From contig NC_043006.1 of the NCBI RefSeq assembly GCF_006345805.1, forward strand, positions 26,598,001 to 26,662,000: a stretch of DNA of 64,000 nucleotides, in the 5' to 3' direction. Every line of letters starts with the position of its first letter. Position 1 is the first letter of the stretch. Shown here piece by piece: positions 17,101 through 41,100 of the stretch. The DNA comes from Octopus sinensis. Taxonomy: Eukaryota. Under the pieces are notes generated by a model. That model saw nothing but the letters and a program-made list of their open reading frames with translations. It was not told where the DNA came from and made no database searches. The position numbers were made by a program, and so were the translations under genes.

Positions 17101-20100
17101 TGCCCTTACTAATGCCAACCACTCCGAGAGTGTAGTGGGCGCTTTTACGTGCCACTGGCATGAGGGCCAGTCTGGCGGTACTGGCAACGGCCATGCTCAA
17201 AATGGTGTTTTTTAAGTGCCACCTGCACAGGAGTCAGTCCAGTGGCACTGGCAACGAACTCACTCGAATGTTTGTTCATGGCACAAATGCTTGTAAGGCA
17301 ATGCTGGTAATGATCACGCTGAAATGGAGGTTTTAACGTGCCACCGGCACGGAAGCCAGACAGCCGCTCTGGCAGTGACCCCACTCAGATGGAGCTGTTA
17401 GTGCTCCACTGGCACGGGTACCAATCATCGAATTTGGTTCAATTTTGATTCCAATTTCACTTGCCCCAAAAGGTCTTCACAAGCAGAGTTTAGTGTCCAA
17501 TGAAGGGAGGTTGGCATGGGTTTCAGTCGTCAAATTTGGTTTGATTTCGAATTCAATTTCGATTTCACTTGCCTCAACAGGTCTTCACAAGCAGAGTTTT
17601 GTGTCCAAAGAAGGAAAGGTATGCATAAGTGGGTTGGCTGCATCCCTGGTAAAGGCCACGAGTTATGGTCTCACTTGTCCAGCTGGATCTTCTCACGCAC
17701 AGCATATTTCCAAAGGTCTCAGTCACTAGTCATTGCCTCGGTGAGGCCCAATGTTCGAAGGTCGTGCTTCACCACCTAGTCCCAGGTTTTTCTGGGTCTA
17801 AATCTTCCACAGGTTCCCTCAACTGCTAGGGTGTGGCACTTTTTCACACAGCTATCTTCATCCATTCTCGCCACATGATCATACCAGCGCCATCGTCTCT
17901 CTTGCACACCACAACTGATGCTTCAGGTCCAATGTATATGTAAATATATATGTGTGTATATATATATATATATGTATATATATATATATATATATATATA
18001 TATATATTATATATATATATATAATATATATATATATATATATGTTGAAAGCAGCAGAAACATCACAAAAACTGGTACTCAGAGTTTCACGTTGCTGTTT
18101 GTCAGACAGTTTTGTTATAATGGAACAGAAATGACGATATAATCAAACAAAAACGTAAAAAGTAGTTTAAATGATACGCCTTTGAAAATGGTTTTATTTC
18201 ATTGGTCTTTTCAACTAATGGTCTTAAGCATGCAATGAATAAAATAAATTCAGTATAAATTCATCCTATTGTAACATTGAAGAAAACCTTAAATCGAAGG
18301 ACAGATTCCAAATACGTATGGTAAATAATCATATACGAAATATAAGTAAATTAATACATTAAAATTAAAATTTAAAATTTTCATGCTGTATTACTTAAAT
18401 ATTCTTTTCAGCCATATATATGCATACTAGACCATCTATAATATACATATATGCACCAATATACACAGATGCATGTACATGGTTATACACATATTTAGAC
18501 TTAAATATGTAAGACATAAATATATACACAAATACACACATATACATATATGTACGCATACATGCATGCGTACAAAATCTCTTGGTATATACATATACAT
18601 GTAAGACATAAATATAAATATACCATAAAAGTGTGTATGTATGTATACTTGTTTTTGTCTGTATATGCATGTTTTTGTGTATGGCTACATTAACATGCAC
18701 GTATATACGTGTGTATATCTGTGTATATATATGTGTATTTCTATATGTTTTTTATATATGGTTTTTCTTTGGTGTATTTTGCATGCACCTTTGTGCATGA
18801 CAACTTTTGTTAATTATGTATGGTTTAATATATCTGGAAAAAGAAAAGGATACATTTTGCCCTCTAAGATTATGCTAGATTCAACAAGAATATTTTGAAA
18901 TAAAGAAGAAACTGTGATAAGAAAATATTGGCAGGTCTGCAATTTATGAATACAGTGTTATTATTGGAAAGAAAAAAACAGAAAAGAAACAGGATAGTAA
19001 TGGATAGTTTGGTGCCTGGGTTAACTGGCTGAGAGGTTTAACTTGTTCAGAAATTTAATCAGGAGCTTCTCTTGGAAATTATGTTTCTTTTTGAAATATG
19101 TTGAAATGAATAATTTGCCTTGTATTTTTTTCTTTTATTAAAAAACTATTCCTCATGATATTTCAGTGTTAAATTTAAAGTTATATAATTTCACAGGATA
19201 GAGCCACTGCTTTCACAGATTCAAACCAATTCCACTACTGTAGTCTGTCCAGAAATAGACAATATAAATTATGCTACCATGTCATATGAGCATACTGGTA
19301 ATTTTGTTGTTGGAGGGTTTTGGTGGAATTTACTCTTTACTTGGCAAAGAATTCCTGGATATCAAAATTCTGATGTGAAACCTGTTAGGTAATTACTTCA
19401 ATTATGCAAGTACAGATATATTGCTTCATGCTTAATGATAGTTTTAGATTCAATTTTTCTTTTTCTTTTTTTTTTTTGGGGTTATTATCATAAAAGGAAA
19501 TCTATGTCTTTTGCTTGTCTTCATTTTTGTATTCCTTTACTTTGGGTTCAAATAATTATTATGTATTTCATTTATTTGTCACCGTAGTAATGGATAGTTG
19601 TTTGGTGCCTGGGTTAACTGGCTGAGAGGTTTAACTCATTCAGAAATTTAATCAGGAGCTTCTCTTGGAAATTATATTTCTTTTTGAAATATGTTGAATT
19701 GAATAATTTGCCTTGTATTTTTTCTTTTATTAAAAAACTATTCCTCATGATATTTCAGTGTTAAATTTAAAGTTATATCATTTCACAGGATTTGTCATTA
19801 AAGGAATGTATTTTTCATTAATTGTACTTGATTTACTATGCAGAGCTAGATGTACTTGTTTAAAACTTTCATAAATACTAGCAGAAAGACCTCCTTCTGG
19901 GCGGTTTTCTGCTAGCCCCTTGATAATATTTTCACATTTCATTCCCAATTTTTATATTTTACGTCTCCTTATTTCTTTTTATAATAGTGCTCACTTACTT
20001 AACAAGTGTTGCTTTCATTATTTTATCACAGTCATAATCTCTCTTTTTTAAACAAACATCATGATAGTCCAACAACAGAGGGAGAAACAGTTTCTCAAGT

Positions 20101-38100: not shown

Positions 38101-41100
38101 CATAAACAAAACTTGACTTAAACAGGATTCAAATAATCCTATCAGGTGGTGCTATTAAGTTAGACATGGCCTGGACCAATCATTGGTCGAAACATATCTA
38201 AGTTTTATCTAAGTTTTATAAAACTACACCAAATTTGAAATTGATTGGAACAAAATTGAAGAAATTCAAAAGTGGCAACCAAACTGAAAAGATCCAATAA
38301 TTTTAAATGAAAATTGTTTTGAATTTTTTAAAATACATTTTTATAAAAGTAATATGATAATTATATCTCTCATTTTAACATTTTTTTTACTTGGGTTTCC
38401 ATTTCTGACATTTTATGTTAGAAAACCAGTTTTAAAGCAATACTAATATTCTACTTTTCAAAGTTTGATATTATTCTTTCCATTGTTTTGATAATTGATT
38501 TCTGTACATTCTCTAGGCTTGTCCCACTTTTAGCACAAATCCATAAGGACCATACCAAAGTGCTATGCCCCATGATTGATGTCATTGATAACAAGGATCT
38601 TGGATATTCTAATAGTAATGGAGTTGCAGTTGGTGGCTTTAGCTGGTCCTTACATTTCACTTGGGAGCCAGTATCACAGCTTCTTGTTGAGCCTTTTAGG
38701 TAATATTTTTTAAAAAATAAAATCAATAGAGATACTAGATTGTTAATTTCTCCTTCAAATTTCATTTCCAATTCTTTGGCCATAAACTATAAAGTTTTTC
38801 TCATCAGATATTCAGTTTTATCATAATTACCATCATTGGTCTCTCCACAGTTGATAAAATACTTGTATTGTTTTTTGGGGGGTTTTAATAGTTGGGATGG
38901 GGGTGCTGATCTTCAAAATTAAATTCAAGAATTGCCTTGTGTGTTTGAACAAGGTAAATGAAACTACTTACCTCATTCTGTGTAACTGAAATATGGTTCA
39001 CTATTTTTACATTATCAGAGTTTTTCAGATATCATCTCAGAAGCTACCACACATGATCTTGAAAAAGCAGTTAAAGACGTTGGTCTTTACGCAAATCTCC
39101 CCAATATATGATACATTTGCTACAATCAGAAGGACTCAATAAGCACAATCAGTGTGTGTACATGTGTTTATGTTTCCTTGTCTTGACATTGCATGATAGT
39201 TGTAAATAAATCACACTCATACTGGCAATGTCATTCCTTTTCAATATACTGCAAGAACATGTCTGGCCATGGGGAAATATTACCTTGCTTGGAAAAAGGT
39301 GATGGTTGGTGACAGGAAGGGCATCCAGGCATTGAAAATCTGCCTCAATAAACTGTCCAACCTATATATGCATGAAAACTGGACATTAAAACAGTGATGA
39401 TGATGAAACAAAATCCTCTAAAATTTGTACACCCCTTTATATACTGAGGAAATAACATTGCATCTATAGAAAAGGTTATAAAAATTTTGTCTCACAAAAG
39501 TATAGGTGGTTCAGTGTCATCTGGAAGTCATTGCCACTTAATAATTTTAAGAGAAGTTTCTTCTATGCCACTGTAGAATCAGTGCTATTGTATGCATCCA
39601 CTGATTGAAAATACACCAAATACCTAGGGGCAATGTGTAATGCAGCTTATATCTGCATGTTACAGGCTGTTCTGAATATTTTGGGGAAAAGCATCCAATG
39701 AAGCTTAGAGAGGGAGACTCTTGCATTTTACAGGACATTCATTAGTGAATTATTCAAATGGACACACTGCTGTCTTGCTAAGACCTTCATTGACCAGCTG
39801 TGTATAGAAAGAGGATGTTGTCTTCCTTATCTCCTGAATGCTAGCCAGAATTGTGATGGGTGGTGTGACTGATTTGTGCAAATCCAGTCTGGCACAACTA
39901 GCTGAAAATCGCTTTTCCACAATATAGTAGCTGCATTTTTTCTCATTTAAAGTTTGTAATTTAAATCTAAAAAAGGAATTATGCTGTGCTTAGTTACAAA
40001 TGTGAAAATAATTCATCATCATTTAACATCCATTGTCCATGCTGGCATGGGTTGGATGGTTTGAATGAATTGGCACATTGGAAGGCTGAACCAAATTCCA
40101 GTCTGATTTGGCATTGTTTTTTTATGGTTGGATGCCCTTCCTAATGCCAACCACTCCGAGAGTGTAATGAATGCATTTAACATGCCACCAGCACAGGTGC
40201 CATTTGCATGACACCAGGGTGCATTTACATGCCACCAGCATGGGTGCCAATTTGTGTAACACCAGTATCTGCCACAACTGTGATTTTGCTCAGCCTGATG
40301 GGTTTTCCTAAGCATGACATAATGCCAAAGGTCTTGGTCATTGCCTCCATGAGACCCAGCACAAGTTATTTTTCGTGTGCAATTTCTTCAGTGCTACTTT
40401 ATTCCTCGTTAATTTAATTGATATGGAATTATTCTTAAACTTTCAGCATTTTCAGTCTTAAGATTTATTAATATTACTAAGTGTGGAGTTCAGAAACTTG
40501 CTTCCCAGTCATGTAGTTTCAGGTGCAGTGCATGGTACCTTGGACAAGTTTCTTCTACTATAGCCTTAGGTTGACAAAGTCTTGTGAAGCTCATCTGTGC
40601 ATGTGCGTGTGTATTTGTGACTTCGTCTTGACATCAGGTGATTGTTGTAAACAAGTGTCACCATCATACAGGTGATGGTCAGGGAAAAACATACCTGACT
40701 GTAGGATAATATTACCTTTCTTGAAATTAGGTGAGGGTTGGTAACAGGAAGGGCATCTGACTATAGAAAGTCTGCCTTAATAAATTCGGTTTGACCCATG
40801 CAAGCATGGAAAAGTGGACACTAAAACAATTCTTCTTCTTCTTCTTCTTCTTTCTCTCTCTCTCTCTCTCTCTCTCTCTCTCTCTCCCCTCCCTCCCCCC
40901 TCTCTCAATAGATAGATACATAGATATTTCCACACTTAAACAATTTTCAACAATCTTTAAAACGAAAATTTAACAAATTTAAGAAAATTTTATTGTTTCT
41001 TTTATGTTTGGTCATGTGTTTTGACTTTGCATCGAGCATATGAGACTTCTTATGATGTTCTGTTATAATTCTTCATTTCTTAATGCTGTTGCAATGATCT

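Follow-up and report, generated by a model that had tools for sequence, protein, structure and literature searches.

Two homologous exons in the catalytic domain of an octopus polypeptide GalNAc-transferase gene: an ancient tandem duplication that probably switches acceptor preference

Polypeptide N-acetylgalactosaminyltransferases (GalNAc-transferases) select the serine and threonine residues at which secreted and membrane proteins are given mucin-type O-glycans, and the source of each isoenzyme's specificity is an active question. Here we describe a 64,000-nucleotide stretch of the Octopus sinensis genome (RefSeq assembly GCF_006345805.1, contig NC_043006.1, positions 26,598,001 to 26,662,000, forward strand; this whole stretch is called the window, and positions are counted from its first letter), which contains part of a GalNAc-transferase gene in which one catalytic-domain exon, exon C, is present twice. 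The two copies, C1 and C2, are adjacent, homologous, of the same phase and similar in length, and thus constitute a tandem exon duplication. It is probable that this duplication is ancient, that it took place within a single gene for a type-II Golgi GalNAc-transferase, and that it gives rise to two enzymes, which would most likely differ in acceptor preference. The two cassettes and the constitutive exons that lie around them in the window are as follows.

19197..19388, plus strand: alternative cassette C1 ('FWW-type' exon), 192 nt, 64 codons including the junction codons; in RefSeq isoforms X1 and X2
38517..38699, plus strand: alternative cassette C2 ('FSW/FTW-type' exon), 183 nt, 61 codons; in RefSeq isoforms X1 and X3
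4969..5135, plus strand: constitutive exon A, start of the GT-A catalytic domain; matched exactly by the RefSeq isoforms; single copy genome-wide
10823..11000, plus strand: constitutive exon B, carrying FLDAHCE (the DxH Mn2+ motif) and ending in TG, with donor TG/gtaggt (here and below, the slash marks the exon boundary)
62129..62246, plus strand: constitutive exon D, starting with A and encoding SPTMAGG...WGGEN; single copy

Both cassettes are preceded by a pyrimidine-rich tract and AG and followed directly by GTAAT (C1, acceptor ttcacag/G and donor AG/gtaatt; C2, acceptor tctctag/G and donor AG/gtaata), and both reading frames are open. The first base, G, of either cassette completes the Trp codon (TG/G) begun in exon B, and the terminal AG of either makes an Arg codon (AGA) with the first base of exon D, so the flanking introns are of phase 2 on both sides. 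An earlier reading of the bare DNA by a model (the original prediction) had given these two exon positions, AG/G acceptors, AG/GTAAT donors, 2-2 phasing and absence of stops, and was accurate for both exons, to the base. It had also aligned the two by hand, at about 25 identities over 62-65 residues; a pairwise BLASTP comparison of the peptides (22 of 50 residues identical, ungapped, E 2e-16) puts their homology beyond chance, and C2 is also the closest match to C1, other than C1 itself, when all 2.72 Gb of the genome are scanned in six frames (E 2e-7). A tblastn search across the window and its flanks found no further exon between C1 and C2. Each cassette is a multiple of three nucleotides long, so that inclusion of both stays in frame and adds 64 amino acids; skipping of both joins B directly to D and creates a TGA stop (TG/A).

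The host gene, delimited by a whole-genome exon scan with the full protein, occupies about 108 kb (C10:26574230-26682683) and is the one that RefSeq names 'probable N-acetylgalactosaminyltransferase 9'. To judge from its DxH and WGGEN motifs and its ricin-type lectin domain, the product is a polypeptide GalNAc-transferase (CAZy family GT27). Pfam domains were found at residues 120-301 (Glycos_transf_2, spanning the cassette, E 1e-34) and 428-547 (Ricin_B_lectin, E 3.5e-20), together with Glyco_transf_7C. Full-length matches in PDB are to GalNAc-T1 (E 8e-141 for the whole protein), PGANT9 (E 1e-133), T4, T10, T12, T7 and T2, and the best PDB matches of cassette C2 are PGANT9 and GalNAc-T1. For the exon search by tblastn, the probe was an intronless octopus paralogue (a 484-amino-acid open frame on contig C4014), and the territory was the window with 60 kb upstream and 140 kb downstream (264 kb). 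This placed four further exons, each in single copy, outside the window (in window coordinates):

-23770 to -23454: first coding exon
68448-68535: exon E, downstream of the window
70721-70818: exon F, downstream of the window
from 75952: exon G, downstream of the window

Canonical GT-AG sites are present at all the listed exons. In the whole-genome scan the remaining 11 coding exons are single copy, exon C alone being duplicated. As the genome contains many GalNAc-transferase paralogues, two interleaved or misassembled paralogous genes, each contributing one exon copy, had to be considered. However, exons 1, A, B and D-J were each detected by tblastn only once across the 60 kb upstream and 140 kb downstream, the genome scan found no copy of the flanking exons with comparable identity anywhere, the same two-exon arrangement recurs in the independent Argonauta assembly, and isoform pairs from eight further species imply it as well. 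The chance that two genes are involved is negligible, and the earlier statement that exons A, B and D occur only once holds for the window, for the 264 kb around it and for the genome; its proposed search for extra copies disclosed no interleaved paralogue.

Both single-cassette products, and one with both cassettes, are already in public annotation. The protein obtained by hand-splicing with C1 alone is isoform X2 (XP_029641990.1, 554 amino acids), letter for letter; that with C2 alone is identical to isoform X3 (XP_029641991.1, 551 amino acids); and isoform X1 (XP_029641989.1, 615 amino acids) carries the two cassettes in tandem. That exon B starts at 10823 is confirmed by the spliced protein, which agrees exactly with XP_029641990.1/991.1. 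X2 and X3 differ solely at residues 222-285 (X2) or 222-282 (X3). No paper describing alternative use of C1 and C2 was found in the literature searchable here. Among the annotated octopod orthologues, the O. vulgaris model (P0005) has an unrelated N-terminus instead of the signal-anchor exon.

The cassette begins directly downstream of the DxH metal-binding motif and ends directly ahead of SPTMAGG; it comprises a helix of the GT-A core together with the strands that come next. Residues 1-51 of C2 align without gaps to residues 234-284 of GalNAc-T2, the whole cassette corresponding to about 234-300. The acceptor groove of GalNAc-T2 is lined by Val255, Leu270, Phe280, Trp282, Tyr284, Phe361, His365 and Phe377, and substitution of Trp282 by Ala nearly abolishes activity (PMC4432651). 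When mapped through the ungapped alignment, five of these eight hydrophobic residues fall inside the cassette. The equivalents of Phe280 and Trp282 (F.W) are retained in both C1 and C2; the other three groove positions differ, as do position 275 and the loop after position 284:

GalNAc-T2 position 255: octopus N in C1, V in C2; mollusc consensus L in C1, A in C2
GalNAc-T2 position 270: octopus V in C1, A in C2; mollusc consensus S in C1, Q in C2
GalNAc-T2 position 275: octopus W in C1, S in C2; mollusc consensus W in C1, S or T in C2
GalNAc-T2 position 284: octopus R in C1, P in C2; mollusc consensus P in C1, D in C2

The residue at position 275 of GalNAc-T2 itself is Asp275. AlphaFold2 models of X2 and X3 (mean pLDDT, the program's own confidence measure, 77 and 84), used for secondary-structure equivalence only, agree in having a helix at 222-231 and strands at 235-244, 258-262 and 268-272. 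Taking these features together, the exchange of C1 for C2 most likely changes preference for the acceptor, whether peptide or glycopeptide, and would leave the donor chemistry, the stem and the lectin domain unchanged. It is rather unlikely that the cassettes are functionally equivalent, with a choice between them that is neutral or serves only to control expression (for example, through the unproductive joining of B to D). Such equivalence would agree with the retention in both cassettes of the Phe280 and Trp282 equivalents and of the CP.ID and GGF.W motifs, and with the premature stop that results when both are skipped; but two types held for more than 500 million years with type-specific groove residues are hard to explain without a type-specific function, and in PGANT9 and PGANT5, discussed below, small cassette differences do alter specificity.

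Evidence that a mature mRNA as a rule contains a single cassette, either C1 or C2, comes mainly from cuttlefish, in RNA-seq assemblies whose proteins belong to the 90%-identity cluster containing an Acanthosepion (Sepia) pharaonis protein. One of these proteins (P0006, 566 amino acids) has a C1-type cassette only and was found on 46 contigs of 2-4 kb; another (P0133, 559 amino acids) has a C2-type cassette only and was found on one contig of 2267 nt; and the two are identical outside the cassette. In each of three separate runs, cuttlefish contigs break off precisely where exon B ends, as is expected of an assembly graph at an alternative junction. A set of 227-amino-acid cuttlefish products might be taken for skipped transcripts joining B to D and ending at the TGA, but this interpretation was rejected, as the contigs just end at exon B; a 296-amino-acid product reflects retention of the intron after C1. 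More widely, 30 of the best 120 homologues derive solely from Logan, ENA or JGI transcript or metagenome assemblies, and each of these has one cassette; every two-cassette protein comes from genome annotation.

These data also bear on the possibility that both exons are normally included together (as in X1, with its 615 amino acids), giving a duplicated core segment and no alternative usage. Double inclusion is in frame, and for at least 15 invertebrate species (O. sinensis and at least 14 others) there are models of about 590-700 amino acids in which both cassettes, whole or in part, are concatenated. The models concerned are:

P0003, P0009-P0015, P0017, P0032, P0044, P0079, P0099, P0100, P0102

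However, many of the two-cassette models are non-RefSeq gene predictions, the assembly-only matches and the cuttlefish contigs carry one cassette at a time, and a second copy of the GT-A helix, strands and groove has no place in the solved GalNAc-transferase structures that were matched. Habitual double inclusion is therefore very improbable, and the concatenated models are probably a systematic annotation artefact, made easy by exons that are in frame with each other. Many invertebrate gene models would thus be wrong in this respect, which deserves a warning to users of the annotation. The original prediction spoke of two enzymes with mutually exclusive cassettes: use of one or the other stands, on the strength of the cuttlefish contigs and of RefSeq X2 and X3; strictness in octopus is less certain, as RefSeq also models X1, in which C1 is joined to C2 in frame.

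Both exons have been retained in Argonauta hians, in the order C1 then C2, between the same flanking exons (exon B ending in TG, exon D beginning with A) and in the same phases. The Argonauta C1 is open, with intact AG and GT and 64 codons as in octopus, and is 75% identical to octopus C1 (47 of 63 residues); for C2 the figure is 66%. Comparison by blastn of the octopus interval from B to D (51 kb) with that of Argonauta (27 kb) aligned exons B, C1, C2 and D and, besides these, just some 10-25 nt of exon flank and dispersed repeats. Nei-Gojobori (NG86) estimates between the two species, expressed as the proportions of non-synonymous (pN) and synonymous (pS) differences and the ratio of the corresponding rates (dN/dS), with p for non-synonymous versus synonymous change, were as follows.

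C1: pN 0.16, pS 0.63, dN/dS 0.135, p 2.5e-8
C2: pN 0.21, pS 0.42, dN/dS 0.40, p 0.013
Constitutive exons A and D-G: pN 0.083, pS 0.70, dN/dS 0.044

Both cassettes are thus under purifying selection, as had been supposed from their open frames, and the two tests proposed with that supposition, retention of the pair in a relative and dN/dS below 1, came out in its favour. They also speak to the view that C1 is a decaying or unused pseudo-exon in octopods, that C2 alone is functional, and that RefSeq X1 and X2 are annotation noise. In keeping with that view, the gene models of O. vulgaris and Argonauta use C2 only; a protein search restricted to cassette C1 returned only O. sinensis X1 and one snail, within the limits of the word index; and octopod C1 has lost four residues and several that are conserved elsewhere (e.g. 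SLHFSW has become NLLFTW). Yet C1 is conserved in Argonauta, with a dN/dS below that of C2, while the surrounding intron can no longer be aligned, so it is not a decaying duplicate; and in cuttlefish the full-length C1 form is on 46 contigs, against one for C2. Disuse of C1 is accordingly improbable.

The synonymous divergence of C2 is not only lower than that of C1 but also significantly lower than that of the constitutive exons (Fisher p = 0.0015, for 38518-38697), and conservation continues beyond C2 for 22 nt on the upstream side and 12 nt on the downstream side. A splicing-related or other RNA-level constraint may be responsible, and the low divergence hints at an RNA-level element within the exon.

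The pair is much older than the octopods. Argopecten, Mya, Physella, Biomphalaria, Littorina and the brachiopod Lingula have annotated pairs of isoforms with no difference outside the cassette. For the chiton Liolophura, and likewise for the tardigrade Hypsibius, one model has both cassettes and another has one, the rest of the protein being identical. The octopus order, with the 'CPEID…GGFWW' type ahead of the 'CPI[IV]DAID…GGF[ST]W' type, is found wherever molluscs and the tardigrade have models of both; rotifers also carry the two types, with the order reversed, and the brachiopod has both as alternative isoforms. In a maximum-likelihood tree of 68 cassettes (68 columns, with weak deep branches), all FWW-type cassettes fall into one group (support 89/95) that includes octopod C1, even that of Argonauta, where the motif is now FSW; the C2 cassettes of cephalopods lie outside this group in a cluster of their own, near other molluscan C2. 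A pre-molluscan (lophotrochozoan) origin of the duplication is thus well supported by the cassette comparisons, and a protostome origin is likely. The suggestion that this might be an undescribed feature of cephalopods falls: the same pair is present in bivalves, gastropods, a chiton, a tardigrade and a brachiopod, and the isoforms were already in RefSeq. The pair is not a cephalopod innovation, and its value is that of a well-supported lead rather than of a surprise.

Several observations weigh against a functional, one-or-the-other switch, or at least against its being strict. The evidence for O. sinensis itself consists of RefSeq models (X2 and X3, but also X1), and RefSeq has two-cassette isoforms in O. 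sinensis, Argopecten, Physella, Biomphalaria and Liolophura, so the C1-C2 junction may be used at some low level. As both exons are multiples of three nucleotides, nonsense-mediated decay would not remove double inclusion, and such frame-based surveillance covers double skipping only. Nor was a means of enforcement evident: steric hindrance does not apply to an intron of 19,128 nt between C1 and C2; blastn of octopus against Argonauta revealed no conserved intronic docking or selector elements in the B-D interval; and RNAduplex comparisons with shuffled sequences, over 150-nt flanks in both species, gave no exon-proximal duplex common to the two (two octopus pairs had z ≈ -2, but neither recurred in Argonauta). 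At the protein level, AlphaFold2 confidence is as low as 50-75 over the latter half of each cassette, the cassettes evolve two to three times faster at non-synonymous sites than the constitutive exons, and those of octopods are divergent and shortened, to 64 and 61 residues from 68 and 67 elsewhere (C2 having been reduced to 61 residues in coleoids and C1 to 64 in octopods). U12-type splicing was also considered as a source of exclusivity and was rejected, since the donors GTAGGT, GTAATT and GTAATA are of the U2 type. On balance we still favour a switch between two enzymes, and for octopus we infer strict exclusivity and tissue regulation.

A fuller interpretation, which we put forward tentatively, is that the protostome ancestor already had the pair, that the groove toggles between two specificities, and that the low pS of C2 marks an RNA-level regulatory element. 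The toggled groove positions would then be those equivalent to 255, 270, 275 and 284 of GalNAc-T2, and the element in C2, perhaps a splicing enhancer or an editing site, would control cassette choice. If this were true, C1 and C2 would be among the oldest conserved alternative-exon switches known in any glycosyltransferase, and would represent an axis of control of the O-glycoproteome that is undescribed in the literature searchable here.

Alternative exons have been described in several other GalNAc-transferase genes. The most similar case is Drosophila pgant9, in which use of exon 8A or 8B (giving PGANT9A or PGANT9B) is tissue-specific and changes substrate preference (Ji et al., 2018, PMC6115407; PDB 6e4q/6e4r). 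This gene belongs to the most similar subfamily, PGANT9 being the best PDB match of C2 and the second best of the whole octopus protein, and there too homologous alternative exons yield two otherwise identical enzymes. However, the fly cassette is of about 30 amino acids and lies in the α repeat of the lectin domain (as the original prediction correctly quoted), whereas the octopus cassette, of 61-64 amino acids, is in the catalytic domain (222-285), and the octopus lectin domain (428-547) is constitutive, its exons being single copy. In Drosophila pgant5, the A and B forms differ by a cassette that is inside the catalytic domain, as in octopus, and that alters specificity, with tissue-biased expression (Kumar et al., bioRxiv Dec 2025, PMC12776162). 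The pgant5 cassette is a different one (residues 398-457, the catalytic flexible loop and a helix-turn-helix): in the octopus gene the corresponding region belongs to exons E and F, which are single copy and lie a short way downstream of the window, and pgant5 is the orthologue of GalNAc-T1, for which octopus has a separate T1-like gene on contig C1.

In Caenorhabditis elegans, gly-5 (exons 9a/9b/9c) and gly-6 (8a/8b) have validated mutually exclusive exons (Kuroyanagi et al., 2014, PMC4165533). These resemble C1 and C2 in being homologous alternative exons, in multiples of three nucleotides, of GalNAc-transferase genes; they differ in encoding only about 35 amino acids and in being kept apart sterically by introns of 11-34 nt, a mechanism that cannot apply to the 19-kb octopus intron. 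Tandem-exon substitutions in GALNT13, Pgant5 and gly-5 have been recognized as recurrent in vertebrates, arthropods and nematodes (Martinez-Gomez et al., 2022, PMC9741552). The events in that catalogue were scored as convergent and affect different regions, and neither molluscs nor the C exon were covered; the C1/C2 pair, to go by the cassette types and their grouping, appears to have been inherited across phyla rather than to have arisen convergently. Its position in the enzyme is not covered by the reports on flies, worms and humans. Work in flies shows that the exchange of a small exon can adjust specificity to the mucins of particular tissues. The octopus cassette exchanges a more central piece than do the fly cassettes, namely most of the hydrophobic acceptor groove, and its two versions have remained distinct from a time before the split between molluscs and brachiopods. 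They are a natural pair of groove variants on an otherwise identical scaffold, and as such could be used in experiments relating structure to specificity.

Other GalNAc-transferase loci of the octopus were encountered in the genome scans. A 'GalNAc-T5-like' gene (C28:12345518-12404755, minus strand) has single A-, B-, D-, E- and F-like exons and, between B and D, three homologous cassette copies (12379595-12379801, 12366239-12366403 and 12361257-12361418), the first of which is canonical and 96% identical to the cuttlefish cassette, the second and third being open but divergent (with IGRFDW, and with the HGIPDxERxRR motif lost). The intronless gene used as the search probe (C4014:22367-25543, with its 484-amino-acid open frame) encodes a catalytic domain without a lectin domain, and four near-identical intronless copies, each broken by a TAG, are arranged along C12464:106555-266248; the intronless copies on both contigs look like retrocopies.

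The introns around the cassettes are rich in repeats, the main features being:

19389..38516, plus strand: C1-C2 intron, 19,128 nt (about 19.1 kb), repeat-filled
21997-23911, minus strand: adjoining open frames of 261 and 389 amino acids, inside the C1-C2 intron

The two open frames match a reverse transcriptase (RVT_1, below the Pfam cut-off) and an endonuclease domain of the GIY-YIG type. Penelope-like retroelements have this combination of domains, and the frames are assigned to one. Close by, 24001-26000 is the GC-richest stretch of the window (GC 0.50), with a G-over-C skew of +0.57, and it includes a 346-amino-acid open frame (24815-25855, minus strand) that has no Pfam match. The C2-D intron contains long open frames of 235, 541, 204 and 213 amino acids at 44209-46542 and 47802-49129 (both plus strand), presumably another retroelement; the 541-amino-acid frame has a weak reverse-transcriptase match, and the other three have no Pfam match. 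Overlapping these frames is a strongly C-rich region at 48-50 kb, which holds a 29-nt tandem repeat (49929-50068). A dispersed repeat of about 150 nt, resembling a short interspersed nuclear element, was found at 43345-43504, 51020-51171, 52164-52318 and 61696-61851, with further sites at 17095-17129, 35388-35434 and 40106-40161, and it also matches several spots in the orthologous Argonauta introns at 70-89% identity. Finally, AT/TA and (TATG/TATA)n microsatellite arrays occupy 352-2272 and 4241-4665, upstream of exon A in the 28-kb first intron.

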